From: Bugula neritina
Taxonomy: Eukaryota > Animalia > Bryozoa
Length of the DNA stretch: 64,000 nt
Assembly (NCBI GenBank): GCA_964035545.1
Contig: OZ037770.1
Location: 2,542,001 to 2,606,000, forward strand
Reading direction: 5' to 3'
Positions 3,642-62,839 of the stretch are shown here, piece after piece. Numbering within the stretch: the first letter of the stretch is position 1; each line of letters begins with the position of its first letter. Made by a program: the position numbers and the translations under genes. A model generated the notes under the pieces. That model was given only the letters and a program-made list of their open reading frames with translations, ran no database searches and had not been told where the DNA came from.

Positions 3642-4479
3642 CTGTAACATTATACAGTGTGATTATTACACAGTGCTAGCAGGTGGTGTCTCTTATTCTG
3701 ACACCTGCCATCTACTGATTGAATATATAAATCAATAGTTAGGTTTCAGCCACCATATAGATACTTGTATATAGAACTAAACTACACATTCTTTGATGGC
3801 AGCTTCAGGTTTAACATAAGATGAAAGTAAAGTATCTAAGTTCCTAAAACTAACTGCATCCTGTATAATCTTTGGAGCTACTCCAAACTCTTGGTACCAT
3901 ATATTTTCCTAATTCTTGTTAAATACATAATTAGAATAAAAACTAAAAGCTTCTTTTAAGATCTCTAAAATTATGCTGATTGTGTTACAATATGAAAAAC
4001 ATCTCAAATCACTCTTTTTATTTATTACATACAATAACGGATCTTAAAAGAATATTTTGAACTTTCGCAATATTTTAAAATACTCACCACCAGTTGCCAT
4101 GGTTACCAAATTTCTTTACATTTGAGTCATTTTAATGTGTTTCAGTTTAGAATTGGCAGCTCCACCTACAACAGATATGAACTATAAAAAATACATTTAA
4201 CTATTCTCTTTTGCTTATTTCGATTTATATTATAAACTAATGGTGCATTTCATTACTTGAAACGACACTGTGTCGAGTTAATATGGAACTTACTTAGTAA
4301 AATACTATATATATAGACACACAGATACGCTAATGGATAGTGTACTGCAAAATCTTGATATATATCATAATATATGTAATAACACGGTACATAGAATTGG
4401 TATGTCAAATTTTATTACGAAAATATTCAAGTCAAATTATATTACACGTAATATAATTTGACTTGTATATTTTTGTTCT

Positions 4480-5079: not shown

Positions 5080-8000
5080 CCTGTTGATGGCATAATATGG
5101 CGTCTCCAGAAAAGTGGTGTACTCCACAGGGGCAAAAAGTCACAGTGAAATGTTGGGGGACGTGTATTCGTAGAGTTTGAGTGCGGAGAATGTACGTCGA
5201 CACTCGCTACGTTTCCTGTGGATGTCCTGTCCAATAATGACCTGTATCAGAGTTCGGGTTTGTCTGGTTGTCCAAGTCGTCTGTCGTAGTAAAGCTAGGA
5301 GTAACTCCAGTTTTTTGGTCTTGTCCAGTTGTATAGCGTAGTCATCAGGGGTGGTTGTCGGCTGTTCCGTCTGCGGCGTCAGGTGTACGTCAGATAACAT
5401 GTCAAGTTCAGCTTCAAATATGTTGTCCCAGTGTGTAGTGGGAGTGTCGAGTAGAGCTTGTATCTTGGAAGATACAGGTACAATGTCGCATGCAACAGAG
5501 TATTCGAATTCAAGCATAATTTTCTCAAATCACACTCCCTGTTGGAGACTCCACCCAGTCAGTACGACACTGTGACTGAGTTGGCAACCAACAACCTCCT
5601 GGTTTTCAAAAACCATTCGAGTGATTGCTCAACTCAAAGTCGCCAGTGAAATCATCTAACATCAGCAGTCCAACTTTATCATTATGACAAAGTGAGACTG
5701 AAGTCGGCTACTAGAATAAATTGTTTAATTATTGCTCACACCCACCTGCTCAGCGGCGACTTTATCCGTCAGCATTTCCGTGTTTCTTACCGGGTCGGTG
5801 TTTGATCCGGTATGAAAACTAAGTCAATATTTCAAGCCAGCGCGCTACTTGGCTAAATGGCTCAGCCTGTTGACACAACCATATCAAGGACGCAGGGTCT
5901 GTTCGTAATCTGACCGCACGCCCACACAGATATGGTCTAAAGTGTTTGACCGCCTTGACTACTGCCAGGAGCTCTCTCCTGGTTGTACAGTAGTTCTTCT
6001 CAGGGGGGCGATAGAGCTTTGCTATAGTAGGCCGCCAACACCTCGCAGCCATCTTGGATCTGAGATAGCACAGCACCTACATTGTGGTCACTGGCATCAG
6101 TATCCTAAATGTACTCTTTTGCCGGATCAGAGTACGCCAAGATGGGCGCCCCCACCAACTAATCCTTGAAGTGGCCAAAATGCCTGCTGTTCTGCATAGG
6201 TCCACTGCCAGCGTACTCCCTTTGCTGTCAGCCGCTTTAGCAGCTGAGCAATTCCTGCAAAGTCAGGTATGTACTGTTGGTAGTACCCTACCAACCCCAG
6301 GAACGCTCAAAATTCAGGAAGGTCGACAGGGACGGCCAGTCCCTCACAGCTTGTACGATCTCCGGGTTGGTGGCGTCTCTGTCTAGACCAACTACGTGGC
6401 CCAAGTAATTAACCTCCTGTTGCGGTAATGCACACTTAGAGGGCTTGAGCTTCAGACCAGCAGCTCAAAGGCTGTCAAACACTTCTCTAAGCCAACTGAC
6501 ATGAGTGCCGAAAATGGAGGAGATGACAATGATATCATCGAGATAGATGAGCAAGGTCTTCTAGTGTAAACCGCTCAGGACCTGCTCCATGAATCCCTGG
6601 AAGGTGGCCGGCGCAGACGTAAGTCCGAACGACAGCACCTTCCACTTCCAGAGCCCGTCTCGCATAATAAACGCTGCCTTGTGCTGTGCATCAGGATTCA
6701 AGGGCACCTGCCAATACCTGCTTAGCAAGTCCAGCGTACTGACTAACTTGCTACCAGCTAAGGCATTTAGCAACTCATCGATCCTAGGAAGAGGGTAAGC
6801 GCCCTGGATGGTCACGCTGTTCAGTTTGCAATAATCCACGCGAAACTTCCAGCTCCCATCCTTTTTTTAAACCAGGACAACTGGAGAGCTCCAAGCACCA
6901 TAGGCTGGCTCAATCAGGTCCTGGTTCAGAAAGTCTTGCACCTACCAGCTCACTTCTTTTTTTTCTCAGGACCTAGCCGACGGGTCAACTGCCTAATAAG
7001 GACTGTCCTCACCGCCAGGAGTATCTCATGACAGACAGCCTTAGCCAGGCCCATGTCATTGCCGCCACAACTGAACACGTCTCTGTAATCAGAGAGTAGC
7101 TGCACCACTACCAGGTGTTCTCGCTTACTCTCACAGCTATCACAGGCATCGCCATACAAATCTACCAAGTTTTCCGGCACTGTTCCCCCGCCGTTCCTAG
7201 CGGGTACTCCCTGGGCTTCATCCACCGTTTCCAGGGTGAGCCCGACATCCTGCTGTTCAGAATGGAACTTCTCTACTAGTGACCCAGCCAACAATTCCAA
7301 CGGCTCCGTGAAAGGGTTTACACACTGGACCAGGAATTTCCCCTGTTTATCCAGCCTATTTAGGCTGTTGGCGAGCTGGACGCTCTCCAGTGCACTTTTC
7401 ACCACTCTTGAGTCGGAGATTTTTCTACAGTTCACTCTGCAGCGGGCTGTAGTCCGGGAGCGCCCAGGTACAGTACAGCGCCGCACCACCTGCACTCCCC
7501 CCAAGGGCCTGCCAAACCGGTCCACACAAATAGCTCACGCCCGGTCATCATCTCCGAGACTTGTTGAAGTCGATGTGGCACTTGTGTCGCTTCAGAAATG
7601 GCATTGACGATGACGGTCTCACTGATCACCTGATCACGGACTCTACCAGTCAACTCTATCACGTCATAGAAAGTAATACACGACCCCTCTGCTAACGTGC
7701 TGTGTTCCCCCCCCCATATGGCTCCAGCTTCGCCTGGTCCCAGGTACTGAAGGTGTCAAACAGACGCCGACACAGGAGATTTTTGGTGCACGCTGTATCC
7801 AACAGGAATGTTGCAGCTTTGCAGGCAACTTTACCGGGAAGAAAATAACTGCTTCCATATAGCTGGGCGCTCACTGAGCGGTTCATCTCTGGAGGTGACA
7901 CCCCATGTGCATAGAGTTGGGAATGCACCTGCCCTTTCCAGTTGCGGGGGGTTTGTCGATGTGTAATGAGCAGCTGAGTTACATCTCGGTCTTGCTTGCA

Positions 8001-9528
8001 CACAGGCGACCGAGTGAAAGCTCGGTCCTGCTCTCGTGTGGGCAACCGAGGGAAATCTTGGTTCTGCTCCCACTCGTCATACCTCTCCTCCTCAGGTAAA
8101 CCTTCAAAGCGGTTTTGAGTGGCCAAGCCAAAGGTTTAGGCGGGCCTTGCGGTCTGCTGACTTTCCGTGGGGCTTGCCTTTCTGGCGAAGGCAGCCTCTT
8201 CACTTATTGGGTTTGGGCCTTGGCCTCGGAGGGTTAAACCGAGACCCACAGTCAGCGAAGTCTACCGCTGGCCGTTGTTGTTTAACTGCCTCTTTCTACC
8301 ATGGGAGCAAATTTGTCCGAAGTGCTCTCCACTACCACAGCCTCAGCATTCGGGGGCTTGCCTGCCGACGACAACTGTTGGCGACCTTGTGGGTCGCTCA
8401 GTTGTCGACTGTTGGCGCAGATGCCTGATCTCGACTAACAGCTCACGAACCAAGCTTGTGGTAAAGCTAGTAGGCTCGTCGGCTGCTGCCGTGGCGACAT
8501 GTACAACCGACTTGGATGACGACGTCGACACGTCGTCGTTTTCCTCCACTTACTGTACTGTCGTCCCAGCTCAGCGCGTACTGTCCGCGTGAAAATATGC
8601 ATTCCCAAGCCTGAAAGCTCGCCCTATAGTCTCAACCTCGGCCACTAGCAAGTGTTGCTTCAGGCCTAGGTTGTTGACAGACTGGAGGAAATAATCTAGT
8701 GCCAGACTCTGTCGGCCATTTGCAGGCAAGTCTCCACAGGCAACTTGTGCTAGCCGCTCAACTACGGTCGCGTGCTCTCTCAAAATAGTTTTAGGATTTC
8801 TCCTAAGTCCTTGGAGTTGCACACGCGCATCTTGAGTGGTGAGCCCAAACCGGGCTCTCAACACCCTAAAGATGTCGCAGACATCCTGACCAATCTCATA
8901 AGGTTTAGTCGGTTCCGTCAGGCACAACCGCAGCTGTATCAGAGTAACCCTGACAGGCTATCCACAGATGGCTGCCACATTGCTCCACATTCTCTTCTCC
9001 TGAGAAGATAGAAGCCTGCAAGTGGTACCTGTCCATAGGCAGCGCTGGACCGCCTATGTCATCCTCCATAGCCGCCGGCTCAACTCGCTTTTCATGGGGT
9101 ACGTCCTCTTTGTCGGCCATCTTTCCTCACTCCTTAACTAGGAGCATTAACTTTAAATTTATCCTACTGCTGCCACCACTGTTGTAAAACTGTGCATTCA
9201 CTAATTGCTGGGTATTTAAAGTAATGTAAAACTGCCAAGTTAAAGAGATTATTATGCGTTTATTTAATACAATATTTACACAAGTAAAACTGTACAATAC
9301 TTAGAAGACAAGTTACATAATTGCAGACAGAATACACACAACCTATTGTTAGCTAATGCACTGCCTGACTGCCGGCTATCCAAGCGTGCTTGCTATCTTC
9401 TAATTGATTAGTCCTGTCTTTGTTAGTAGCGTAGTAAGTACTGTCAGGCCGAATATAGGAAGGCCCGCTAATAGAAAAGTAGCAGGAGAGCTGTTCTTTT
9501 GATAATACTACTATACAAAATCTCTACA
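5080..9528 (-). mobile_element. Gypsy/Ty3 LTR retrotransposon A (decayed; 5' LTR ~9180-9528, gag, PR, RT, RNase H, integrase deleted, ORF3 remnant, no 3' LTR)
   Basis: PBS 9161-9178 (reverse complement TGGTGGCAGCAGTAGGAT); gag from 9120; LLDTAC protease; RT (YPLPRID, FGLTSAPATFQ); RNase H (NYCTTRRELLAV); homologous to elements B and C. Confidence 0.92.
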
Positions 9529-18833: not shown

Positions 18834-21252
<2,419 letters not shown>

Positions 21253-21307
21253 CTGCTACTACTACTATCACCAATAATAGTGCTTTGTTATACTCATCCC
21301 ACACCTT

Positions 21308-24300
21308 TTAAACAGATACTATTTTCCCAACTCTGATATCCAGTCTGTTGGACAATAAAGGAAGTTCAGACGACGGACTTACTTCAGACTGAAAGTTTTT
21401 CTCTATATCTCCGTAATTCGTGTAGATCTTGTTCCCTCCGAATTCCTCCTTCCTTTCAATTAGCAACTCTGTAACAGGCAATCAGCAACTGCTTAATAGA
21501 CAATTGGCAACTCTGAGATATAACTCAAGTAATACATAATATATAACTCAAGTTATACATAATATATAACTCAAGTAACACATAATATATAACTCAAGTA
21601 ATACATAATATATAACTCAAGTAATACATAATATATAACTCAAGTTATACATAATATATAACTCAAGTAATACATAATATATAACTCAAGTAATACATAA
21701 TATATAACTCAAGTAATACATAATATATAACTCAAGTAACACATAATATATAACTCAAGTAATACATAATATATAACTCAAGTAATACATATTATATAAC
21801 TCAAGTAATACATAATATATAACTCAAGTAACACATAATATATAACCAAAGTAATACATAATATATAACTCAAGTAATACATAATATATAACTCAAGTAA
21901 CACATATTATATAACTCAAGTAACACATAATATATAACTCAAGTAACACATAATATATAACTCAAGTAACACATAATATATAACTCAAGTAATACATAAT
22001 ATATAACTCAAGTAATACATAATATATAACTCAAGTAACACATAATATATAACTCAAGTAACACATAATATATAACTCAAGTAACACATAATATATAACT
22101 CAAGTAATACATAATATATAACTCAAGTAACACATATTATATAACTCAAGTAACACATATTATATAACTCAAGTAACACATAATATATAACTCAAGTAAC
22201 ACATAATATATAACTCAAGTAATACATAATATATAACTCAAGTAATACATAATATATAACTCAAGTAATACATAATATATAACTCAAGTAATACATAATA
22301 TATAACTCAAGTAATACATAATATATAACTCAAGTAATACATAATATATAACTCAAGTAATACATAATATATAACTCAAGTAATACATAATATATAACTC
22401 AAGTAATACATAATATATAACTCAAGTAACACATAATATATAACTCAAGTAACACATAATATATAACTCAAGTAACACATAATATATAACTCAAGTAATA
22501 CATAATATATAACTCAAGTAACACATATTATATAACTCAAGTAACACATATTATATAACTCAAGTAACACATAATATATAACTCAAGTAACACATAATAT
22601 ATAACTCAAGTAATACATAATATATAACTCAAGTAATACATAATATATAACTCAAGTAATACATAATATATAACTCAAGTAATACATAATATATAACTCA
22701 AGTAATACATAATATATAACTCAAGTAATACATAATATATAACTCAAGTAATACATAATATATAACTCAAGTAACACATAATATATAACTCAAGTAACAC
22801 ATAATATATAACTCAAGTAACACATAATATATAACTCAAGTAATACATAATATATAACTCAAGTAACACATAATATATAACTCAAGTAACACATAATATA
22901 TAACTCAAGTAACACATAATATATAACTCAAGTAATACATAATATATAACTCAAGTAACACATATTATATAACTCAAGTAACACATATTATATAACTCAA
23001 GTAACACATAATATATAACTCAAGTAACACATAATATATAACTCAAGTAATACATAATATATAACTCAAGTAATACATAATATATAACTCAAGTAATACA
23101 TAATATATAACTCAAGTAATACATAATATATAACTCAAGTAATACATAATATATAACTCAAGTAATACATAATATATAACTCAAGTAATACATAATATAT
23201 AACTCAAGTAACACATAATATATAACTCAAGTAACACATAATATATAACTCAAGTAACACATAATATATAACTCAAGTAATACATAATATATAACTCAAG
23301 TAACACATAATATATAACTCAAGTAATACATAATATATAACTCAAGTAATACATAATATATAACTCAAGTAATACATAATATATAACTCAAGTAATACAT
23401 AATATATAACTCAAGTAATACATAATATATAACTCAAGTAATACATAATATATAACTCAAGTAATACATAATATATAACTCAAGTAATACATAATATATA
23501 ACTCAAGCAATACATAATATATAACTCAAGTAATACATAATATATAACTCAAGTAATACATAATATATAACTCAAGTAACACATAATATATAACTCAAGC
23601 AATACATAATATATAACTCAAGTAATACATAATATTTAACTCAAGTAATACATAATATATAACTCAAGTAATACATAATATATAACTCAAGTAATACATA
23701 ATATATAACTCAAGTAATACATAATATATAACTCAAGTAACACATAATATATAACTCAAGTAACACAGAAGAATAAATTAGCTATCACTAAGAATGTAGA
23801 CAGTATAGACAGAACGACAAAGCACCAGTGAGAGCTAACCGCCAGTGCCTACCACTGTTGTCCTTGACATTGAAGAGGACGTGCTTGACGAAGGCCAGAA
23901 CCCCGTTATCCGAGACGTTTCCGGGCTCACAGAACGCCATCTTTAGCTTCTTTTTCACTTGCGCAGCCGAGTCCAACAAATCTATTTTCGAGGAGTCGTC
24001 CGATGAGCTCATCTTAGCTCCAGCGAGTCCAGGAACTGAGAAACACACGAGATGATAGACCAAAGGCTAGATAAATGCAGAACTGAGGCTAAATAAGAGC
24101 AACTTGTAGAAAGTAGAGGGTTGGGGATCGATATTCAATAGAGACTAATACTGTGTAATTCAGGAAGAGAGATATTTATGTATACACATGCAAGAACTTT
24201 CGATCTTGGTTTGCGACCAGAAATATTTGGTCACGCTTTGGTGACTTTGATTCATGTAGAGAAGATAACTAACAATAGTAGTAACGATGAGCCAATAGAG

Positions 24301-24426
24301 CTGATAGAAAAATATGCATTCATAAGAGACATGCTGTCATTTCACTCTACATTTTAAATATATAAAAGTTTCAGTTTACTCAATGAAGATAGAAACGGGT
24401 AGTATTTGTATAGATGTGGTCGGATG

Positions 24427-24512
<86 letters not shown>

Positions 24513-27485
24513 ATGGCAAGAGCTTTGTAACTGCATAAAGCCATGGATCTATTAGGTTACTGAATAGGGAACATAACGGGAACCCCTCCCATTCTAATTG
24601 TCATACTGTAAAAAATTCACAGTACATTCTCAATTACTGCCTTGCTCACCAGTTCCAGGAGAAAATAGTTGAGGACCTACCCATAGGGTTCATGAGATGG
24701 GCCCTCTGCGCATAGCCCAGTTTGGGCAGATACTTTTCAGCAAATGTGAAAATCTTTCGCTGGTCTACTCCACCGAACTGTGCATCACACTTCAAATATT
24801 CTTCATCGAGCGCTTGTAGACCAGGGTACAGCATTCCTGTAAGGAGCCAACGTTATGCCATGACGTTATGTCACCGACTAACACAGCTATTTATTAAATC
24901 ATTACCCTTTCCAGTTGACCATAAAATGGCCGTAATATTTTAACCTGCATGTCTTGTATAATAAATAAGATTCTTTGACTTGATAATGAGTCAAACTACT
25001 TAGGACAGAGTCACATTGGCTCTTTAAGTTGAGTCAGTCAAACTCATAAATTACTCTACAGTCATGGTATTTACTCAACACTAGGAAGTGTAGCTGTCAT
25101 ATGCCTTCAAGCTAATTATTCTATCAGCAAAACTTTTATCATATTTATAAGGAAGTGGAGGAGAGCAAAGTTCTCTTTAATCATGTTTCTGAGATGTAGT
25201 TAGACAATCTAGATACATCTCACGGTGGCTGGTAAAAATGTCACAAGTGGCAAAGTAGGTAGAGATGGCACATTTTCAATATTATGGTTTGGGGTGAGAG
25301 CGGGGGGGGGGATGGGGGTTTGGGAAAATTTAACATCAGTTTGCCATTTTTACTTATTTTCTATTTGTACCATTATTACCTAAACCATACACTACAGTAC
25401 AATACACAATTAAATAACCTAGACATACACTGCAGTAAGAGACATATTATATATTATATTATATATTATATAGTGCAGCACTATCTCAATACGATATTAT
25501 ATTCTACATATTATATTACATTATGCTCAACTGTATTATATGTTATACTACACCAATATCTCATACCATAGCATATTATATCAGAGTATATAATACCATA
25601 TGAAGAACTATAAGAGTTTACCACTTAGCAAGGGATGATCAACCTGTTTAACCACCTCAGCGCCGGCCTTCTTCGCGTCGTGCTCAGTTACCATAGACGA
25701 CAGTCTGTAAATATGTATAGACATCAATGGATTGAAGCACACTAGCTGTTGAAATCAGTGTGGACAATAACACAAACTGCATACACAAACCACTATCTAG
25801 AGTATAAGCTGGTAGAGCTCATTGCATGTAGTATCATTACCTGTATACGTCAAGTGTGTACTCTCGACTCAGTTCGTAGTCGGTTCCCTTCACAAACTTG
25901 AGTTTCTCAAGTGGCACTCCAATGGACTTGAGCATGGCCTTGATGACTCTCTGGTAGTACTCACACCTCTTCTCAAGCAGCGACCACGGGGCCTTCATGT
26001 TGTCCAGGTAGGCGTGCAGGTCAGCAAACAGAATGGTTACCTGTAAGCATTCACGTGGTATGACATCATGTCGTCTGCATGTAGTCGTGTGACGCCATGT
26101 CGTCTGCATGTAGTCATGTGACGCCATGTCGTCTGCATGTAGTCATGTGACGCCATGTCATCTGCATGTAGTCATGTGACGCCATGTCATCTGCATGTAG
26201 TCATGTGACGCCATGTCGTCTGCATGTAGTCATGTGACGCCATGTCATCTGCATGTAGTCATGTGACGCCATGTCGTCTGCATGTAGTCATGTGACGCCA
26301 TGTCGTCTGCATGTAGTCATGTGACGCCATGTCGTCTGCATGTAGTCATGTGACGCCATGTCGTCTGCATGTAGTCATGTGACATCTAGTATAACAAGCT
26401 GTCTAGTATAACAAGGTGTCTGTGTGCAGTAAAGATTATTAAAAGACACTCTTTAAGTTTGAAACATACAGAATATTATATTTTTAATAAACATGAAAAT
26501 TATATCTACAAAAGGGCGAATGACAGACATCAAATTGCGACCAGCTTGTATGCAGATTTACTCGGGATAAGGAATTTGGAAAACACAGGAAACGGCATCT
26601 TTTTTTGTAAAAAGAGAAATTGATTGAATCAAATCGGGGAAAAGGTACTATTACGGAGGAACGAGCTAAAAGTGGACTGCGATATCAAACTAGAAACAAG
26701 AACACTTTCTAGACCTGCCATCAGAGGTCAAAGGTTAAAGCCTCACTGACTTCTTTCGCGGAGTCAACATATTATAAATATTACAGCTTGTTTCTTATAC
26801 CACAGGATTCAACTGCCTAACAACTTATGTCATTCAGTAAACCCTAAGCTTAGCGTCTGCTACCAAGTCTTACCTCACATCCTGCTTTGAGGAAATCGGC
26901 CAGCTTGGACATGGGCACGAAGTAGGCTATGTGCGGTTTGCCGGTAGTGGCTGTTCCCCAGTAGACTTTCAGGTCTCTTTCCTTCCACACTGCCTTGATC
27001 TTATCTTCCCCCAACACTTCCTGGTAACACAGTAACCTTGATGTCTACATACTCACTGATTGACTCACTCACTCACTCACTCACTCACTCACTCACTCAC
27101 TCACTCACTCACTCACTCACTCACTCACTCACTCACTCACTCACTCCCTCACTCACTCACTCACTCACTCACTCACTCACTCACTAACTCACTCACTCAC
27201 TCACTCACTCACTCAATCACTCACTCAATCTCTGACTCACTCACTCGCTCACTCACAATACTACATACATAAACTTCCAAGTTGGTGATGATTTAATATT
27301 CAACTAAAATGAAAATAAATAATGCGAAGGGAGTATTGAAATTACAATAGAGAAATTGCCCATTACCACACATACAGCTGCCTATGATGGCCAAGCATAC
27401 AAAGATATAGGTAATGGGTCACATGACTAACCTGTAGGTTTCTGCTTATCAGTGCATATTTTTCGTCCACAGAAAGACCAGCCAT
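21308..27485 (-). CDS. YARS1: Cytoplasmic tyrosyl-tRNA synthetase, copy 1, C-terminally truncated (possibly a pseudogene); exons 27432-27485, 26874-27020, 25841-26040, 25622-25704, 24681-24836, 23853-24035, 21383-21468, EMAP II stub 21305-21344
   Basis: Spliced [13 protein letters not shown]...[14 protein letters not shown]...[14 protein letters not shown]...[13 protein letters not shown]...[11 protein letters not shown]...KMSSS...GGNKIY; all introns GT-AG and phase-compatible; 303 codons. Confidence 0.93.
21518..23766. repeat. 23-bp minisatellite ATATAACTCAAGTAA(T/C)ACATAAT in a TyrRS copy 1 intron (about 98 units)
   Basis: Direct tandem array. Confidence 0.97.
26067..26385. repeat. 29-bp minisatellite CATGTCGTCTGCATGTAGTCATGTGACGC (about 11 units; about 4 units at 33672-33787)
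   Basis: Direct tandem array next to the exon 3 acceptor. Confidence 0.95.
27050..27255. repeat. (CACT)n microsatellite (paralog at 34398-34506)
   Basis: Direct. Confidence 0.95.
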
Positions 27486-27617
27486 GTTCGATTCAATTCC
27501 TGGAACCTAAAGCACAATAAATAATACACATAACACTATTGAAATAAATGAAATGCTTTAGTTACTCCTAGTTTAAGTGTAACTTTCTAATTCACGAATG
27601 GCTATAAAATATTATTT

Positions 27618-27745
27618 GGGAGCAGCTGTGGTCAAGGGGTTAGAGTGTTTGCTTAGTAAGCACGAAGTATGGGTTTGAACCTCAGTAAAGGACATTGATA
27701 ATGTAAGGAAGAGCATCCAGTCATAATTGCTCCTGTGCCTCATAC
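27618..27745 (+). mobile_element. tRNA-derived SINE fragment (paralog ~34874-35000)
   Basis: A-box-like TGGTCAAGGGGTTAGA and B-box-like GGTTTGAACC, followed by a GGAAGAGCATCCAG core. Confidence 0.55.
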
Positions 27746-29943
27746 GAATACTAGTAAAGGCAGTAGTTGTCCAGAAGCAACCTAGAGAGTTACACAAAGA
27801 GCTAGAGTGAATGGGAAACAATCATCATCATATTGGAATTATCTTCCCAGATGCTACACAATCATAGTAGAAGTTTTATTCACTAATATAAAATAAACTG
27901 ATTAGAATTCTAAACACATTTGCTTTAAGAGTGACATCACCAGAGGCACATAATTATACAATTTGAGCTTAAATCATTAACTTTAGATCGTATATATTAA
28001 CAGTTATAACATTATGCTCCCAAAAATAAAACACTCGCTTAAAGTAGACTTAACTAGTTACATTTAAATAAGCATAAAGTTATAGAGAAATATTTCAACA
28101 ACCAGCTAAGTACAGTTTCAGAGTTGTGTGCACATACATCTACTAAACTTAGTAATGGTAACCGTAGAGAATACTGATTATTGCTAACTTTTTTTACACA
28201 CTATTCTAAGATTGATAACAAGCTAGAGTAAGTAAGTAAGAAAATAGATAAAGTAGTTATACTAGAAACATCTAGAGCCAAAGACGCTTCGTACTGAGCA
28301 TTTGAAAAAATAGCCTAATTTCCACACATAATAATAAAGAGTAGTAAAATAATATGTAACTGAAAACTGAAGTTTGATCAGAACAGTGTTAAATTATGTA
28401 TCCAACATAATTACAAAACTCTTAAATTTTGTGTGGTAAAAAGGTTGCAGCATCAAATTCAAATTTACTATTCATCACCCAACCAAGAAATGGGGGAGAA
28501 AGGTGATAAAAAATTTTAATATCATTTTAATGTACATTAAATATAATTTGAATTTTAATTTTATGATAAACGAATGCCATTACTACTATCAAAATCTTTT
28601 TTATTTACTTCGATTGTAATCATGCTGTAAATATAAAACTTTTACAGATAATTTGGAAAACAAGGTAGAAGGAACAATTGAAAACAATTGTGGACAAAGA
28701 AAACTATAAATTCAATTTTGTTGATCATACAACTTGAAAGTTGTGCCGGAGTTGCAGCCTAAGCAGTCCTGCAGAATTTACGTCAGGCTTTTAATGGAAA
28801 AATAAACAATATCTAAATAGCAATCATCATCTAAGAATGGATTTTAGAACATTATGGTTATCTTAGTTTTTACTAGTGTCAACATTCATGTAAAACAAAA
28901 TTAAAATACAACTTGCGTTTACACAACATAATAAAAAAGGAGTAACTAAAATGAACACAGATATAATTATAAATAAATCAATTAAGAATATTGAATTTTT
29001 TTTCCAAGTAACTGAAAGAAGCAGTCAATTTTATTAAAGTAACAGCTCTAAATAAGTTTCTTTATTATAAACAAGACACACAAACCAAAGTAATATAATA
29101 GCAATTAGTGAAATCAGTGAAGTTTTAAAAAAAACCTAAAATTTAGCTACTCATTTTGCACACACATTTATAGCAAATTTGATAATTTTGTGTAACATGA
29201 GTTACAGCCACACTTTGCAGCTGTCATCGTCATACAATTAATTTCTAGGCACCTGAGTAACTTAGATTTAATTACAGTAGGTACATTGCAGTTAGAATAC
29301 AACATATAGGGATTCATAATCATATTGAGATTGCTAGATAAAGTCTAAGTAAGTGGGCCATTCACTAAAACAGCCATAAAAAAGTCATGGAATCTATCAC
29401 CATGTTCATGGTACTTAATATATCATTAGAAGTTGTGATCACCAGCAGGTATATCTGTCACCCTTACTATTTAAAACAATAATGATCTCAGAGTTTGACT
29501 GCTACATAAAATCAAAACTATGCTATACACTTTTGTTAATGATGGATGTTTAATTTTAACTCTAGTGTGAACAGAGCATAATAGTAAGTCAGTCTGTAAG
29601 TCAGTGTTGAAGTAAATGTAGCTATTTATAAAAATATTTCTAAGCTTATGGTGACTACAGTGAGGTTTATGATTTTATGTACTCATACTGTAAGTAATGA
29701 TCAAAGTGACACCCCAAGGCTGAATGTAATACCAACACTTAAGCGTGCATATGCTAAAATTTAAATACAATGAGCTTGGTGATTTATATTCACATGACTC
29801 ATATAACAATTTAATTTTACATCTCTAGTCAGTGAATAATCTACAGTTATAGAGATTATTTGTCAAGCTTCACAAGTTAGTCATATATATACAGATAGAA
29901 ATTAAATAGATTCTGTAATAAAAGATGAGATCTGCACAATATT

Positions 29944-30008
29944 TACTACTACTACTACTACTACTACTAGTAGTACTACTACTACTACTAGTAGTACTAC
30001 TACTACTG

Positions 30009-30047
<39 letters not shown>

Positions 30048-30230
30048 GTAGTAGTACTACTACTACTGCTACTACTACTACTGCTACTACTACTACTACT
30101 ACTACTACTAGTACTACTACTACTACTACGACTATCAGTACTACTACTACTACTACTACCAGTACTACTACTACTAGTACTACTACTATTGCTACTACTA
30201 CTACTACTACTACTGTTGCTACTACTACTA
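29944..30230. repeat. (CTA)n microsatellite with short inverted (TAG) segments
   Basis: Direct; source of the poly-Leu and poly-Val ORFs. Confidence 0.95.
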
Positions 30231-30270
30231 TCACCAATAATAGTGCTTTGTTATACTCATCCCACACCTT

Positions 30271-33200
30271 TTAAACAGATGCTATTTTCCCAACTCTGAT
30301 ATCCAGTCTGTTGGACGATAAAGGAAGTTCAGACGGCGGACTTACTTCAGACTGAAAGTCTTTCTCTATATCTTCGTAATTCGTATAGATCTTGTTCCCT
30401 CCGAATTCCTCCTTCCTTTCAATTAGCAACTCTGTAACAGGTAATCAGCAACAGGCAATCAGCAACAGGCAATCAGCAACAGGTAATTAGCAACAGGCAA
30501 TTAACAACTGCTTAATGGACAATTGGCAACTCTGAGATATAACTCAAGTAATACATAATATATAACTCAAGTAATACATAATATATAACTCAAGTAACAC
30601 ATAATATATAACTCAAGTAATACATAATATATAACTCAAGTAATACATAATATATAACTCAAGTAATACATAATATATAACTCAAGTAATACATAATATA
30701 TAACTCAAGTAACACATAATATATAACTCAAGTAATACATAATATATAACTCAAGTAACACATAATATATAACTCAAGTAATACATAATATATAACTCAA
30801 GTAATACATAATATATAACTCAAGTAACACATAATATATAACTCAAGTAATACATAATATATAACTCAAGTAATACATAATATATAACTCAAGTAATACA
30901 TAATATATAACTCAAGTAATACATAATATATAACTCAAGTAACACATAATATATAACTCAAGTAATACATAATATATAACTCAAGTAACACATAATATAT
31001 AACTCAAGTAATACATAATATATAACTCAAGTAATACATAATATATAACTCAAGTAACACATAATATATAACTCAAGTAATACATAATATATAACTCAAG
31101 TAATACATAATATATAACTCAAGTAATACATAATATATAACTCATGTAATACATAATATATAACTCAAGTAATACATAATATATAACTCAAGTAACACAT
31201 AATATATAACTCAAGTAATACATAATATATAACTCAAGTAATACATAATATATAACTCAAGTAATACATAATATATAACTCAAGTAATACATAATATATA
31301 ACTCAAGTAATACATAATATATAACTCAAGTAATACATAATATATAACTCAAGTAATACATAATATATAACTCAAGTAATACATAATATATAACACAAGT
31401 AACACGGAAGAATAAATTAGCTATCACTAAGAATGTAGACAGTATATACAGAAAGACAAAGCACCAGTGAGAGCTAACCGCCAGTGCCTACCACTGTTGT
31501 CCTTGACATTGAAGAGGACGTGTTTGACGAAGGCCCGAACCCCGTTATCCGTGACGTTTCCGGGCTCGCAGAACGCCATCTTTAGCTTCTTTTTCATTTG
31601 CGCAGCCGAGTCCAACAAATCTATTTTTGAGGAGTCGTCCGATGAGCTCATCTTGGCTCCAGCGAGTCCAGGAACTGAGAAACACACGAGATGATAGACC
31701 AAAGGCTAGATAAGAGCAGAACTGAGGCTAGATAAGAGCAACTTGTAGAAAGTAGAGGGTTGGGGATGGATATTCAATAGAGACTAATACTGTGTAATTC
31801 AGGAAGAAAGATATTTATGTATACACATGCAAGAAATTTCGATCTTGGTTTGTGACCAGAAATATTTTGTCACGCTTTGGTAACTTTGATGTGTGTAGAG
31901 AAGATAACTAACAATAGTAGTAGTGATAACTCAATAGAACTGATAGAAGAATATGCATTCATAAGAGACATGCTGTCATTTCACTCTACATTTTAAATAT
32001 AGAATAGTTTCAGTTTACTCAATGAAGATAGAAACGGGTAGTATTTGTATAGATGTGGTCGGATGTTATATAAATATTATATATAATGACAAGGTATACC
32101 GTAGGCCTATGGAACAACCGCTTTGTAACTGCTTAAAGCCATGGATCTATTAGGTTACTGAATAGGGAACATACCGTGCCCCCCTCCCATTCCAATTTTC
32201 ATACTGTAAATATTTCACAGTACAATCTCAATTACTGCCTTGCTCACCAGTTTTAGGAGAAAATAGTTGAGGACCTACCCATAGGGTTCATGAGATGGGC
32301 CCTCTGCGCATAGCCCAGTTTGGGCAGATACTTTTCAGCAAATGTGAAAATCTTTCGCTGATCTACTCCACCGAACTGTGCATCACACTTCAAATATTCT
32401 TCATCGAGCGCTTGTAGACCAGGGTACAGCATTCCTGTAAGGAGCCGACATTATGTCATGACGTTATGTCACCGACTAACACAGCTATTTATTAAATCAT
32501 TACCCTTTCCAGTTGACCATAAAATGGCTGTAATATTTCAACCTGCATGTCTTGAATAATAAATAAGATAATTTGACTTGATAATCAGTCAAACTAATTA
32601 GGACAGAGTTACATTGGCTCTTTAAGTTGAGTCAGTCAAACTCATAAATTACGCTACAGTCATGGTATTTACTCAACACTAGGAAGTGTAGCTGTCATAT
32701 GCCTTCAAGCTAATTATTCTATCAGCAAAACTTTTATCATATTTATAAGGAAGTGGAGGAGGGCAAAGTTCTCTTTAATCATATTTCTGAGATGTAGTTA
32801 GACAATCTGGATACAACTCACGTAGCCGGTAAAACTGGCACAAGTGGCAAAGTAGGTAGAGATGGCACATTTTCAATATTATGTTAGGGGTGAGAGCGGG
32901 AGGATGGGGGTTTGAGTTTAGGGTTTGGGAAAATTTAACATCAGTTTGCCATTTTTACTTATTTTCCATTTGTGCCATTATTACCTAAATCATACACTAC
33001 AGTACAATACACAATTAAATAACCTAGACATACACTGCAGTAAGAGACATATTATATATTATATTATATATTATATAGTGCAGCACTATCTCAATACGAT
33101 ATTATATTCTACATATTATATTACATTATGCTCAACTGTATTATATGTTATACTACACCAATATCTCATACCATAGCATATTATATCAGAGTATATAATA

Positions 33201-34742
33201 CCATATGAACAACTATAAGAGTTTACCACTTAGCAAGGGATGGTCAACCTGCTTAACCACCTCAGCGCCGGCCTTTTTCGCGTCGTGCTCAGTTACCATA
33301 GACGACAGTCTGTAAATATGTCTAGACATCAATGGATTGAAGCACATTAGCTATAGAAATCAGTGTGGACAATATCACAAACTGCATACACAAACCACTA
33401 CCTAGAGTATAAGCTGGTAGAGCTCATTGCATGTAGTATCTTTACCTGTAGACGTCAAGTGTGTACTCTCGACTCAGTTCGTAGTCGGTTCCCTTCACGA
33501 ACTTGAGTTTCTCAAGTGGCACTTCGATGGACTTGAGCATGGCCTTGATGACTCTCTGGTAGTATTCACACCTCTTCTCAAGCAGCGACCACGGGGCCTT
33601 CATGTTGTCCAGGTAGGCGTGCAGGTCAGCAAACAGAATGGTTACCTGTAAGCATTCACGTGGTATGACATCATGTCGTCTGCATGTAGTCATGTGACAC
33701 CATGTGGTCTGCATGTAGTCATGTGACGCCATGTCGTCTGCATGTAATCATGTGACACCACGCTGTCTGCATGTAGTCATGTGACGTCTAGTATAACAAG
33801 GTGTCTGTGCGCAGTAAACATTATGAAAGGGCACTCTTCAAGCTTGAAACATACAGAATATTATATTTCTCTTAATAAACATAAAAATTAATATATACAA
33901 AAGGGCAAATGACAGACATCAAATTGCGACCAGCTTGTTCAAAATAGTAAGTATGCAGATTTACTCTGGATTTACGCAGGCACGAGCTAAAAGTGGACTG
34001 CGATAACAAACTAAAAACAAGAACACTATCTGGACCTGCCATCAGAGGTCAAAGGTTAGAGTCTGACGGACCTCTTTCACAGAGTCAACTTATGACTCAA
34101 CTTCAAATATTACAGCTTGCTTTCTTATACCACATGATTTAGCTGCCTAACATCTTATGTCATTCAGTAAACCCTAAGCTTAGCGTTTGCTACCAAGTCT
34201 TACCTCACATCCTGCTTTGAGGAAATCGGCCAGCTTGGACATGGGCACGAAGTAGGCTATGTGCGGTTTGCCGGTAGTGGCTGTTCCCCAGTAGACTTTC
34301 AGGTCTCTTTCCTTCAACACTGCCTTGATCTTATCTTCCCCCAACACTTCCTGGTAACACAGTAACCTAGATGTCTACATACTCACTGATTGGCTCATCA
34401 CTCACTCACTCACACACTCACTCACACACACTACTCACTCACTCACTCACTCACTCACTCACTCACTCACTCACTCACTCACTCACTCACTCACTCACTC
34501 ACTCACGATACTATATAAAACATTATACATAAACTTCCAAGTTGATGATTTAATATTCAACTAAAACGAACATAAATAACGCAAAGGAGTATTTGAAATT
34601 ACAATAGAAAAATTGCCTATTACCGCACACACAGCTGCCCGTGATAGCCAAGCATACAAACATATAGGTAATGGGTCCCATGACTAACCTGCAGGTTTCT
34701 GCTTATCAGTGCATATTTTTCGTCTACAGAAAGGCCGGCCAT
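30271..34742 (-). CDS. YARS1: Cytoplasmic tyrosyl-tRNA synthetase, copy 2, C-terminally truncated (possibly a pseudogene); exons 34689-34742, 34204-34350, 33446-33645, 33227-33309, 32279-32434, 31492-31674, 30346-30431, EMAP II stub 30268-30307
   Basis: Same exon lengths and phases as copy 1; HIAY and KMSSS motifs intact. Confidence 0.93.
30537..31404. repeat. 23-bp minisatellite (same unit as 21518-23766), about 37 units
   Basis: Direct. Confidence 0.97.
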
Positions 34743-37700
34743 GTTCGATTTGATTCCTGGAACCTAAGCACAATAACTAATATACGTAATACCATTGAAA
34801 TACATCAAATGCTTTAGTTACTCTTAGTTTAAGTGTAACTTTCTAATTCACCAGTGGCTATAAAATACTATTTGGGAGCAGCCATGGTCTAGGGGTTAGA
34901 GCATTTGCTAGTAAACACAAAGTATGGGTTTGAACCTCAGTAAAGGCCATTGGTGATGTTAGGAAGAGCATTCAGTCATAATTGCTCTTGTGTCACATAT
35001 GAATAAGTCATTAGCACGTTTTAGCAAACACCAGTTTCTTCAGGAGTTTTTTCACAGGAATGGCGACTATCAACTTGAGATTTTTAATAAAATATTATTT
35101 TTTATGAGATATTACTTATGAAGTAAAACCAGCAAAGGTTTGGCTCTGGCTCTAAGTTTTTTTCCCACAATGTCTTATTTTAAGCAGCAACCCAAACTAG
35201 TAAAAACAGTAGTTGTCCAAAAGCAACCTAGATAGTTACACAAACAATCATAATATTGGAATTACCTTCCCCAATGCTATACAATTATAGTAGAAGTTTT
35301 ATTCACTAATATGAAACAAAACTGATTAGAATTTATTCTAAACATATTTGCTTTAAGAGGTACAAACAACATCACCAGGGGCACATAATAAACAGTTTGA
35401 GCTTGAGCCATTAACTTTATATCGTATATCTATAGAGAAATATTTCAACAAGCAGCTAAGAACAGTTTTAGAGCTGTTTTAAATTTTGTGCACATACATC
35501 TACTAAACTTAGTAATGGTAGCCTTAAAGAATACTGATTATTACTAACTTTTATTACACACTATTCTAAGATTGATAACAAGCTTCAAATACATGTTATA
35601 TGAGCTGAAAAGTAAGAAAATAGATAAAGCAGTTATGCTACAGCAAAAGATGCTGTTTACTAAGCATTTGAAAAAATAGCCTGATTTCCACACATAATGA
35701 TAAAATGCTGTAGTAAAACAATATGTAACTGAAAACTGAAGTTTGATCAGAACAGTGGTAAATTATGTATCCAACATAATTAATTTTGTGTGGTAAAACG
35801 GTTGCAGCATCAAATTCAAATTTATTATTTAAATTCATCACCCAACCAAGAAATGGCAGAAAAAGGTGATGAAAAATTTCAATACTATTTCAATATATAT
35901 TAAATATAATTTTAATATGTATACATATTCAATGTAAAGCAAAATTAAAACATAAGTCGAGTTTAAGCAACATAATAAAAATGAGCTGCTAAAACGAACA
36001 CATATATAATTATAAATAAATCAATTTAGAAGCTTTATATTGAATTGTTTCCAAGCAACTGAAAGAAGCAGTCAATTTTATTAAAGTAATAGCTGTAAAT
36101 AAATTTTACCCCCTTCCGTGACTCATTTATTATAAACAACGCTCACAAACCAAAGTAATATAATAGCAATCAGTGAAATCAGTAAAGTTTTAAAAACCTA
36201 AAATTTAGCTACTCATTTTGCACACACATTTATAGCAAATTTGATAATTAGGTTAATGGTTAGATTAGATCTTTCAATACCTAATTTTGTGTAACATGAG
36301 TTACAGGCACACTTTGCAGCTCTTACTATCATACAATTAATTCATAAAATTAATTTCTAGGCACTTAAGTGACCTAGATTTAATTACAGTAGGTATATTG
36401 CAGTTAGAATACAACATTCGAAATTTGAGGGACTCATATTAATATTTAATTTGCTAGATAAAGTCTAAGTGAGTGGGTCATTCACTAAAACATCCATAAT
36501 AAAGTCATGGACTCTATCACCATGTTCATGGTACTTAGTATATCATTAGAAGTTGTGATCACCAGCAGGTATATCTGTCACCCTTACTATTTAAAGCAAT
36601 AATGATCTCAGAGTTTGACTGCTACATAAAATAAAAACTATGCTATATACTTTTGTTAATGATGGATGTTTAATTTTAACTCTAGTGCGAACAGAGCATA
36701 ATAGTAAGTCAGTCTGTAAGTTAGTGTTAAAGTAAACGTAGCTACTCATAAAAATATTTCTAAGCTTATGGTAACTACAGTGAGGTTTATGATTTTATGT
36801 ACTCATACTGTAAGTAATGATCAAAGTGACACCCCAAGACTGAATCCAATACCAACACTGAGCTTGGTGATTTATATTCACATGAATCATGTAAGAATTT
36901 AGTTTTACATCTCTAGAGTCAGTGAATAATTTATAGTTTAGCTTCAAGCTAATACTTATAGACTGAAGTATTATTATTCTCAGTATAAGTATAGATTAAA
37001 GTCACCCTGCAATCACTGTGGTTATAATTATGGCATTATTATAGCTATACTTTCTCTGGAGCTGAGAGTTGGCAATCCCAAGTCAGTTTTACAAGCATCT
37101 TGTGATCTACTCGAATCCACATGAACAGTAATGAAAGTATAATAGTCAGTATGAGTATCACTTTTAATACTACTAGTAATAGTCACTAATACCAATAGTA
37201 ACTGTAAGTTGCTAGAAGTAGAAGTGAATGTTAAAGTCAAATTGTCGTTTTGACAATTACAATCACTGACTGAGTTTTGATAAATCAATGATACTAATAG
37301 TAATAGTAATACTAGTCCTATTACTAATACTAAATTTAATAGTATTACTAGTATTAAATTTAATACCAATAGTAGTACTCATGCTTAACACTGACAGGCT
37401 TAACAGCGTAAGTATATATACCAATGTCAATGTGAATATCCCTGGCTACAGGCTAAAACCATAGTCCATAGTGGTAGAGAGTATCAGTATAGCTCTCAGT
37501 CTCACTCTGAGAGGCAGTTAGTAATGGTAATACTAATAGTAATATTAATACTAATAATAATAGTAATAAATAGTATAAGTAGTACTATTACTATTAGTAT
37601 TACTATTAGTATTAGTATTACTAATTCATTAATTCACACTCACTCTGACTCTCGGAGTGAGACCCAATCCCATACTGACAGTGATACTCATACCGATAGT

Positions 37701-40571: not shown

Positions 40572-62839
<22,268 letters not shown>

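Follow-up and report, generated by a model that had tools for sequence, protein, structure and literature searches.

Human mini-TyrRS (YARS1 residues 1-364) is an N-terminal part of the cytosolic tyrosyl-tRNA synthetase (TyrRS) that lacks the EMAP II-like domain and keeps the catalytic Rossmann fold with both signature motifs. It is made from the full-length protein and retains a complete anticodon-binding domain, up to about residue 342-364, as well as the ELR motif, on which the cytokine-like activity depends. Truncation by duplication is known from human SRGAP2C, where a segmental duplication removed the 3' exons but left the promoter and the N-terminal part that dimerises; the truncated copy was later duplicated again, and its product is able to pair with the full-length protein. 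Unprocessed pseudogenes can also arise as passengers of an expanding receptor family, as intron-bearing partial copies that miss the 3' part and their own polyadenylation site and whose intron repeats have expanded. Finally, a synthetase active-site domain is selected without an anticodon-reading domain in GluQ-RS/YadB, PoxA/EpmA, HisZ and insect SLIMP, families that diverged long ago and whose new substrates are established. PoxA has been named as such a paralog (PMC3950694). Here we describe two truncated TyrRS copies, A and B, in a 64,000-nucleotide stretch of the genome of the bryozoan Bugula neritina (assembly GCA_964035545.1, contig OZ037770.1, positions 2,542,001 to 2,606,000; G000:C6:2542001-2606000), hereafter the window, together with their intact parent gene YARS1, called P, which lies on the same contig. 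Positions are window coordinates unless prefixed, and negative values lie left of the window.

Like mini-TyrRS, A and B correspond to the N-terminal part of TyrRS without the EMAP II-like domain, with the Rossmann fold and both motifs kept. They differ from it in being separate genes that stop at the equivalent of residue 302, without HPGDLK and the last helices, and in reading EKR in place of ELR; by these sequence features they are not mini-TyrRS in the vertebrate sense. They share with SRGAP2C the mode of origin and differ from it in concerning an enzyme, in phylum and in age; expression and pairing with the parent are, for A and B, predictions, and their constraint is deduced from sequence divergence. 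Whereas the GluQ-RS, PoxA, HisZ and SLIMP families are old, A and B are nearly identical to P. Unlike passenger pseudogenes, they carry no stop, frameshift or splice loss in 303 codons, and omega, the ratio of nonsynonymous to synonymous divergence (dN/dS), is about 0.1 and not about 1. In our view A and B resemble two known kinds, partial duplicates whose truncated products work through a dimeric parent protein, and core-only synthetase paralogs. Translation of a catalytic-core paralog is supported by an omega of about 0.1 on both branches, with synonymous change at the neutral expectation, and we favour, with about even confidence, the interpretation that A and B are translated and constrained truncated TyrRS paralogs.

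Gene structure, parent gene and shared deletion

Copy A spans 21308-27485 and copy B 30271-34742, both on the minus strand. Exon borders were set by hand and with a script, the exons were searched singly, and the joined coding sequence was used in the scripts that counted substitutions. Each copy has seven exons, begins with an ATG and holds an open frame of 909 nt, that is 303 codons ending in ...FQSE, with GT/AG at all borders (12 intact splice sites per copy) and no disabling lesion within the retained codons. These exon models bear out the initial annotation, made from the sequence alone, which had described 303 intact codons, the HIAY and KMSSS motifs and intact splice sites in both copies. 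In A, exon 1 (27432-27485) contains the ATG and 18 codons and is followed by exon 2 (26874-27020), exon 3 (25841-26040), exon 4 (25622-25704), exon 5 (24681-24836), where the Rossmann core ends, exon 6 (23853-24035), where the anticodon-binding domain starts, and exon 7 (21383-21468), which keeps a GTAAGT donor. Exons 1 to 7 of B lie at 34689-34742, 34204-34350, 33446-33645, 33227-33309, 32279-32434, 31492-31674 and 30346-30431. Aligned by exons, the copies cover residues 20-68, 69-134, 216-273 and 277-302 of human cytosolic TyrRS. Exon 2 is identical to the human enzyme at 40 of the 49 positions of residues 20-68 and carries HIAY, a HIGH-type motif; exon 6 aligns with residues 216-273 and carries KMSSS, the KMSKS-type loop; the homologous sequence stops at human-equivalent residue 302, at the end of exon 7. 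The human ELR motif reads EKR in exon 3 of both copies, as had been noticed earlier, and P reads EKR as well.

A genome-wide profile search (216 Mb, 321 contigs) gave matches to PF00579, the Pfam profile listed for cytosolic (archaeal/eukaryotic-type) TyrRS of class Ic, on exons of A, including exon 5, and on exons of B and P. PF01588, the profile that marks the EMAP II domain, has just three matches in the 216-Mb genome, one in P (C6:2517396-2517596) and two on contig C2; there is none near A or B, where 12 residues of the EMAP II-like domain are left. Other candidates for a second cytosolic TyrRS were rejected: the PF00579 match on C4 belongs to a TrpRS of mitochondrial type, and C101:16438-17103 and C199:10706-11554 are class Ic synthetase genes with seven in-frame TAA each. 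A word search of a protein database returned no candidate for the 57-residue junction open reading frame of A, although short exon reading frames seem to fall outside that collection, so that the result is silent on expression. The exact sequence of the 96-residue reading frame of A that holds exon 3 is not on record in the look-up, and the pattern of the deletion junction had no match in metagenome contigs.

The initial annotation had proposed a search for a full-length YARS1 elsewhere in the genome. The search found P on the same contig and strand as A and B, left of the window (about C6:2516266-2522243, minus strand), its start codon lying ~41 kb left of the 3' end of A. P is a full-length gene. 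The seven exons also found in A and B are followed by one exon with ALHPGDLK, the linker and the start of EMAP II, and the gene continues with EMAP II exons (PF01588, E = 4.5e-21) to a normal C-terminal exon. The proteins of A and B differ from that of P at 3-4 of 303 residues, and the coding DNA at about 2%. In a self-comparison of 102 kb, the sequence from -24301 to -3032, which runs rightwards from intron 8 of P, is collinear with 29944-63550. Both copies derive from P, the cytosolic TyrRS gene, as unprocessed partial duplicates. Exons 1-8 of P were copied, along with the promoter and the neighbours upstream, in a segmental duplication of at least 21 kb that broke on its left side within a (TAC)n microsatellite of intron 8; this microsatellite is found at 29944-30230, where units A and B also meet. 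The first 8.7 kb of the segment were then copied in tandem as unit A (21254-29852), which matches 30217-36859; unit A includes about 2.4 kb upstream of A (27486-29852, minus strand), the presumed promoter, up to the end of the unit at 29852. The remainder of the segmental duplication, collinear with the right side of P, occupies 34743-63550.

Compared with P, both copies miss the same 240 nt between two TCTG tetranucleotides; the loss takes 76 nt out of intron 7, which measures 88 nt, and extends 164 nt into exon 8. Exon 7 is fused to the remaining 12 nt of intron 7 and to the 66 nt left at the end of exon 8, which keep their native frame (21305-21382 in A and 30268-30345 in B, both minus strand). 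The exon 8 remnant codes for the last 8 residues of the linker and the first 12 of EMAP II, followed by a stop and the last codon. The stop (21308-21310 in A, 30271-30273 in B) is a GAA>TAA change two codons ahead of the old exon 8 donor (AAG/GT); without it, the frame would pass the microsatellite into a long hydrophobic tail. Read-through from exon 7 gives, as predicted earlier, a product of 327 residues, with a ...FQSEVSPS... tail. Alignment to P likewise upholds that both copies share the deletion and the TAA and that no more EMAP II exons follow, but it corrects the description of the remnant as 38 nt followed by a 40-bp exon stub. The reported loss of "exon(s)" with HPGDLK and the linker stands in so far as both are gone; in P, HPGDLK, the linker and the EMAP II start form a single exon.

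The junction reads GAA-GTAAGTCCG(T/C)CG-TCTGAACTT in the copies. A and B differ from each other 3 and 15 nt from it, so the deletion is older than the A/B split; these differences also rule out a recent spread of the deletion from one copy to the other by conversion. Contigs assembled from the raw reads of the public run X1 match A exactly across the junction (21324-21441), and the junction is therefore no consensus error, although X1 is possibly the assembly's own sample; the deletion thus exists in reads, where the initial annotation had raised the idea of an assembly artefact. The order of events is thus the segmental duplication, then the 240-nt microhomology deletion and the GAA>TAA change, then the 8.7-kb tandem duplication that gave A and B.

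Several smaller features belong to the same region. Nine nucleotides just past the old exon 8 donor, GGGATGAGT (21291-21299), occur in A, in B and in P-like contigs of runs X2 and X5; they are missing from the assembled P near position 4030 of its extracted region (L016), probably through a deletion private to that P allele. Contigs of X2 and X5 with GAA at the stop position were considered as truncated copies without the stop and rejected, for they leave the sequence of A at 21273, the exact divergence point of intron 8 of P, and are more simply P alleles carrying the 9 nt. Intron 6 of both copies contains a 23-nt minisatellite (unit ATATAACTCAAGTAATACATAAT on the plus strand, 97% identity), with about 98 copies in A (21518-23767) and about 38 in B (30537-31402). 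It is not found in P, whose intron 6 measures 181 nt, which indicates that the array arose in the truncated lineage and has changed in length since. A 29-nt tandem repeat in intron 2 (10.9 copies in A at 26067-26383, 4.1 in B at 33666-33785) yields spurious ATG-started reading frames that run into exon 3.

Selection on the retained codons

An exact recount agreed with the initial annotation: A and B differ at 24 sites in 909 nt, 17 synonymous and 7 nonsynonymous, without indels. With P as third sequence the differences could be assigned to branches, giving 13 changes on branch A (9 synonymous, 4 nonsynonymous), 11 on branch B (8 and 3) and 5 on the branch of P plus stem, all synonymous. The purifying-selection pattern proposed earlier is real and becomes stronger once P assigns the branches. 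A neutral expectation was obtained from introns 1-5, aligned three ways, by applying their substitution spectrum and rate to the coding sequence. Intron divergence was 3.2%, 3.8% and 3.2% per branch in the raw alignment and 1.9%, 2.4% and 2.4% after masking of gap edges and hypervariable windows. The model predicts 9.0 synonymous and 25.0 nonsynonymous changes per branch, 1.5 of the latter being nonsense. On A and B together 17 synonymous changes were observed against 18.1 expected, and 7 nonsynonymous changes against 50. The binomial probability of at most 7 nonsynonymous changes among 24 is 7.5e-6, and this ratio test is independent of the intron rate. The Nei-Gojobori omega between A and B is 0.108 (bootstrap 95% confidence interval 0.03-0.25), and neither copy shows the omega of about 1 by which a pseudogene is recognised. 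These counts indicate that, since the A/B split, silent change has run at the neutral rate and amino-acid change at about one seventh of it. The synonymous changes on the two branches (12 GC>AT, 5 AT>GC) match the prediction of the intron spectrum for derived mutations, given a third-position GC content of 62%. Indels are absent from the 909 nt of either copy, against 26 events in the introns on both branches, a contrast that is overstated since intron indels gather in simple repeats.

The signal varies along the gene. Omega is 0.045 in codons 1-213, the Rossmann core, and 0.25 in codons 214-303 (exons 6-7, the rest of the anticodon-binding domain), and in the 78-nt tail all three A/B differences are nonsynonymous in the read-through frame. 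Exons 1-6 hold 5 nonsynonymous and 16 synonymous differences versus 5 and 1 in exon 7 plus tail (Fisher P = 0.015). By these estimates constraint is graded: it is strongest in the Rossmann core, weaker in the remaining anticodon-binding domain and absent in the 24-residue tail. The caspase p20 exons with a QACSG active site (49789-50553, minus strand; partner at -13406 to -12771), which were duplicated along with the TyrRS gene, differ at 14 of 414 nt, with 7 synonymous and 7 nonsynonymous changes; a strong silent bias is therefore no general trait of this segmental duplication.

Expression was assessed on assembled contigs of public runs, which can miss rare forms and cannot prove absence. 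The RNA run X7, a sample of 2016, contains a contig joining exon 6, exon 7 and the exon 8 of P (...ALHPGDLKAA...) at a depth of about 600, and a second one of about the same depth that covers the end of exon 8, has GAA at the stop position and departs at the old exon 8 donor. P is thus expressed as spliced mRNA. At the diagnostic positions 21310, 21397 and 21411, which cover variants private to A and the shared stop, all depth in X7 shows the letters of P, and no X7 contig lies over the deletion junction or over 21258-21304, the first ~50 nt beyond the old donor. The X7 mRNA of P departs from the assembled P at 21398 and 21401 in exon 7, one of these changes turning Lys298 into Asn (AAA>AAT); the mismatches are a real allele, a sibling-type difference or a contig error.

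Several observations weigh against translated, constrained paralogs. When a duplicate lacks its 3' part and is a passenger next to a receptor family in expansion, the default expectation is a pseudogene. No transcript of A or B appears in the X7 contigs, from a sample that may or may not carry the copies. The copies have no polyadenylation signal in common, the nearest ones lying 643 nt and 458 nt past the stop in non-homologous DNA. The radical replacements L30W (private to A, exon 2), G108E (private to B, exon 3) and L260R (private to B, exon 6, like V240M) hit residues identical in human TyrRS. Along the gene the site patterns of A, B and P form clusters (P = 0.00035 in a runs test) and differ from intron to intron (P = 0.0015 for heterogeneity), and the contrast of 5 nonsynonymous to 1 synonymous differences in exon 7 plus tail would be equally expected if conversion had limited reach near the breakpoints.

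Gene conversion and other explanations

The most serious rival, possible though in our judgement doubtful, holds that A and B are untranslated pseudogenes, passengers of the duplication of the neighbouring caspase-type receptor genes, and that their silent-biased differences come from repeated interlocus conversion by divergent alleles of P; only the seven amino-acid changes, along with whatever else changed in exon 7 and the tail, would then be neutral mutations of their own. Clustered site patterns imply that some exchange among the copies is real, and by this test gene conversion has taken place. An intact donor is at hand ~41 kb away on the same strand, with introns 93-96% identical. Each copy pair shares one or two longest identical tracts of 160-220 nt, and exon 7 plus tail, which minisatellite, deletion and breakpoint cut off from the rest, looks neutral. 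The radical replacements at conserved residues and the sole presence of P mRNA in X7 would fit as well. In X1, the synonymous letter of A at 21422 is also seen on contigs that are not of A type, whereas the two amino-acid variants of A in exon 7 occur on no contig but the A-type one. High heterozygosity, "similar to the oyster dataset", is reported for the species (PMC7576161).

However, conversion wipes out synonymous, intronic and nonsynonymous differences alike, so that a loss of about 85% of the expected amino-acid changes would need exons 1-6 of both copies to consist almost entirely of recent imports. Oyster-level heterozygosity would cover only part of the branches. The donor alleles would have to reach the distance that separates the paralogs, diverging from the assembled P by about 4-5% in introns and about 7% at synonymous sites, well above what we take as an oyster-like level. 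No long tract identical to P is found, and repair never reached the deletion, the stop TAA or the indels that both copies have in common across introns 1-5. Divergence is moreover uniform: between P and B it is 5.3% in the 6-kb flank versus 4.8% in introns, and for A-B and A-P it is 4.5-5.2% further upstream versus 4.3-4.4% in introns. The introns (4.3-4.8%) are thus level with the flanks (4.5-5.3%) and with a stretch of about 200 nt on the 3' edge that conversion should reach with difficulty and that shows an equally star-like pattern (5 sites private to A, 1 to B, 6 to P). This uniform non-coding divergence, together with an undiminished synonymous divergence, argues against bulk homogenisation of the gene body. 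Homogenisation confined to exons was also considered and rejected, as synonymous divergence is not lowered. The initial annotation had named conversion from divergent functional alleles as its alternative; uniform divergence weakens this explanation, while the clustered patterns and the nearby donor keep it the main rival. Were it true, low dN/dS in young duplicates near their parent would be no proof of function.

A second alternative, which we consider improbable, is that A and B functioned as genes, or as conversion partners, up to the very recent past, or that they are segregating structural variants, and that past constraint is now giving way to decay. The climb of omega towards the 3' end and the appearance of L30W, G108E and L260R would agree with a recent release, as would the fact that the two amino-acid variants of A in exon 7 are seen on the reference-type contig of X1 only and not in X2, X5 or X7. 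But truncation, deletion and stop are all shared, with A-B differences flanking them, which places both branches wholly in the truncated state, and a divergence of 9% at synonymous versus 1% at nonsynonymous sites demands constraint for most of that time. Most improbable of all is a misassembly in which both haplotypes of a single truncated copy were placed in tandem as A and B. The high heterozygosity of the species would fit it, the units differ in length chiefly by minisatellite copy number and contig depth did not settle copy number, yet the A-B divergence (4.3-5.2% cleaned, 7% raw) equals the distance of each copy from P and exceeds ordinary heterozygosity by our own estimate, the unit junction (29852 versus the microsatellite at 29944) lies inside a 16-Mb contig, and such an error would change the copy number alone, leaving the constraint signal and a truncated gene in place.

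Proposed product and genomic neighbourhood

If A and B are translated and constrained, transcription would be driven by the duplicated housekeeping promoter, and the product of about 327 residues would keep the Tyr-AMP active site and the dimer interface while having lost both the EMAP II domain and the Pro-Asp element for reading G34. TyrRS functions as an obligate dimer. By our own placement, F300 in exon 7, which is kept, is probably the Phe stacked on G34. HPGDLK, the Pro-Asp element of the complete anticodon-binding domain, is present in P and gone from A and B. In yeast TyrRS, Phe296, Pro320 and Asp321 read G34, and a tRNA bound to eukaryotic TyrRS spans the dimer, with its acceptor stem on one subunit and its anticodon on the other (PMC1934993). 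By this comparison the Pro-Asp element that reads G34 is the deleted HPGDLK. In a heterodimer of truncated and full-length chains, a tRNA held on the anticodon domain of P could then be charged in the active site of the truncated subunit. A damaged core would poison dimers of an essential enzyme, so that selection might hold the core while the C-terminal remnant decays; such a mechanism needs no benefit from the copies. We tentatively propose, while regarding it as rather unlikely, that A and B are expressed as subunits pairing with full-length TyrRS, the truncated site charging the tRNA and the P subunit reading the anticodon. This would be a natural split of the two functions of a synthetase between the products of two genes. 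Of the role suggested by the initial annotation, a core-only paralog with a non-translational function, the catalytic-core part is supported by the omega of about 0.1, whereas a non-translational or cytokine-like function is not, ELR being absent from P too and the homologous sequence ending at residue 302.

Transcripts running from B into A could add a further form. The end of B exon 7 and the start of A exon 2 are both in phase 0 and lie 3.3 kb apart, and B exon 7 could splice to A exon 2 to give a single-chain pseudo-dimer; the double-length TyrRS of trypanosomatids offers a likeness. To our knowledge, core-only synthetase genes are known mainly as old bacterial paralogs, and truncated synthetases of animals are usually splice or proteolytic products. 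The A/B case is young and can be dated, with about 2% divergence per branch, a parent preserved nearby and a graded loss of constraint from core to tail. If the copies are expressed, they would provide a direct test of whether selection against poisoning of an obligate dimer can preserve a partial duplicate, and would show how far a eukaryotic TyrRS works without anticodon reading.

The flank on the side of B carries a long terminal repeat (LTR) retroelement of the Ty3/gypsy kind at about 41400-49680 on the plus strand, with open reading frames for gag, protease, reverse transcriptase and integrase; retroelement stretches are also located at 5140-8927 and 55619-62592. It is missing from the collinear flank of P, which dates its insertion after the segmental duplication, and its terminal repeats (41746-52 versus 48912-49218) are 96.1% identical, making it slightly younger than the duplication. 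Repeat arrays with a spacing of about 21 nt lie on either side of it (41278-41746 and 49219-49811). On the other side, divergent contigs downstream of A had been considered as alternative haplotypes and were rejected, the segment 20066-21250 being a dispersed repeat with copies on other contigs. The whole of 18834-21250, immediately downstream of A, is made of dispersed repeats with copies 82-97% identical on C2, C4, C5 and C7, and the left side of the segmental duplicate thus adjoins repeat DNA.

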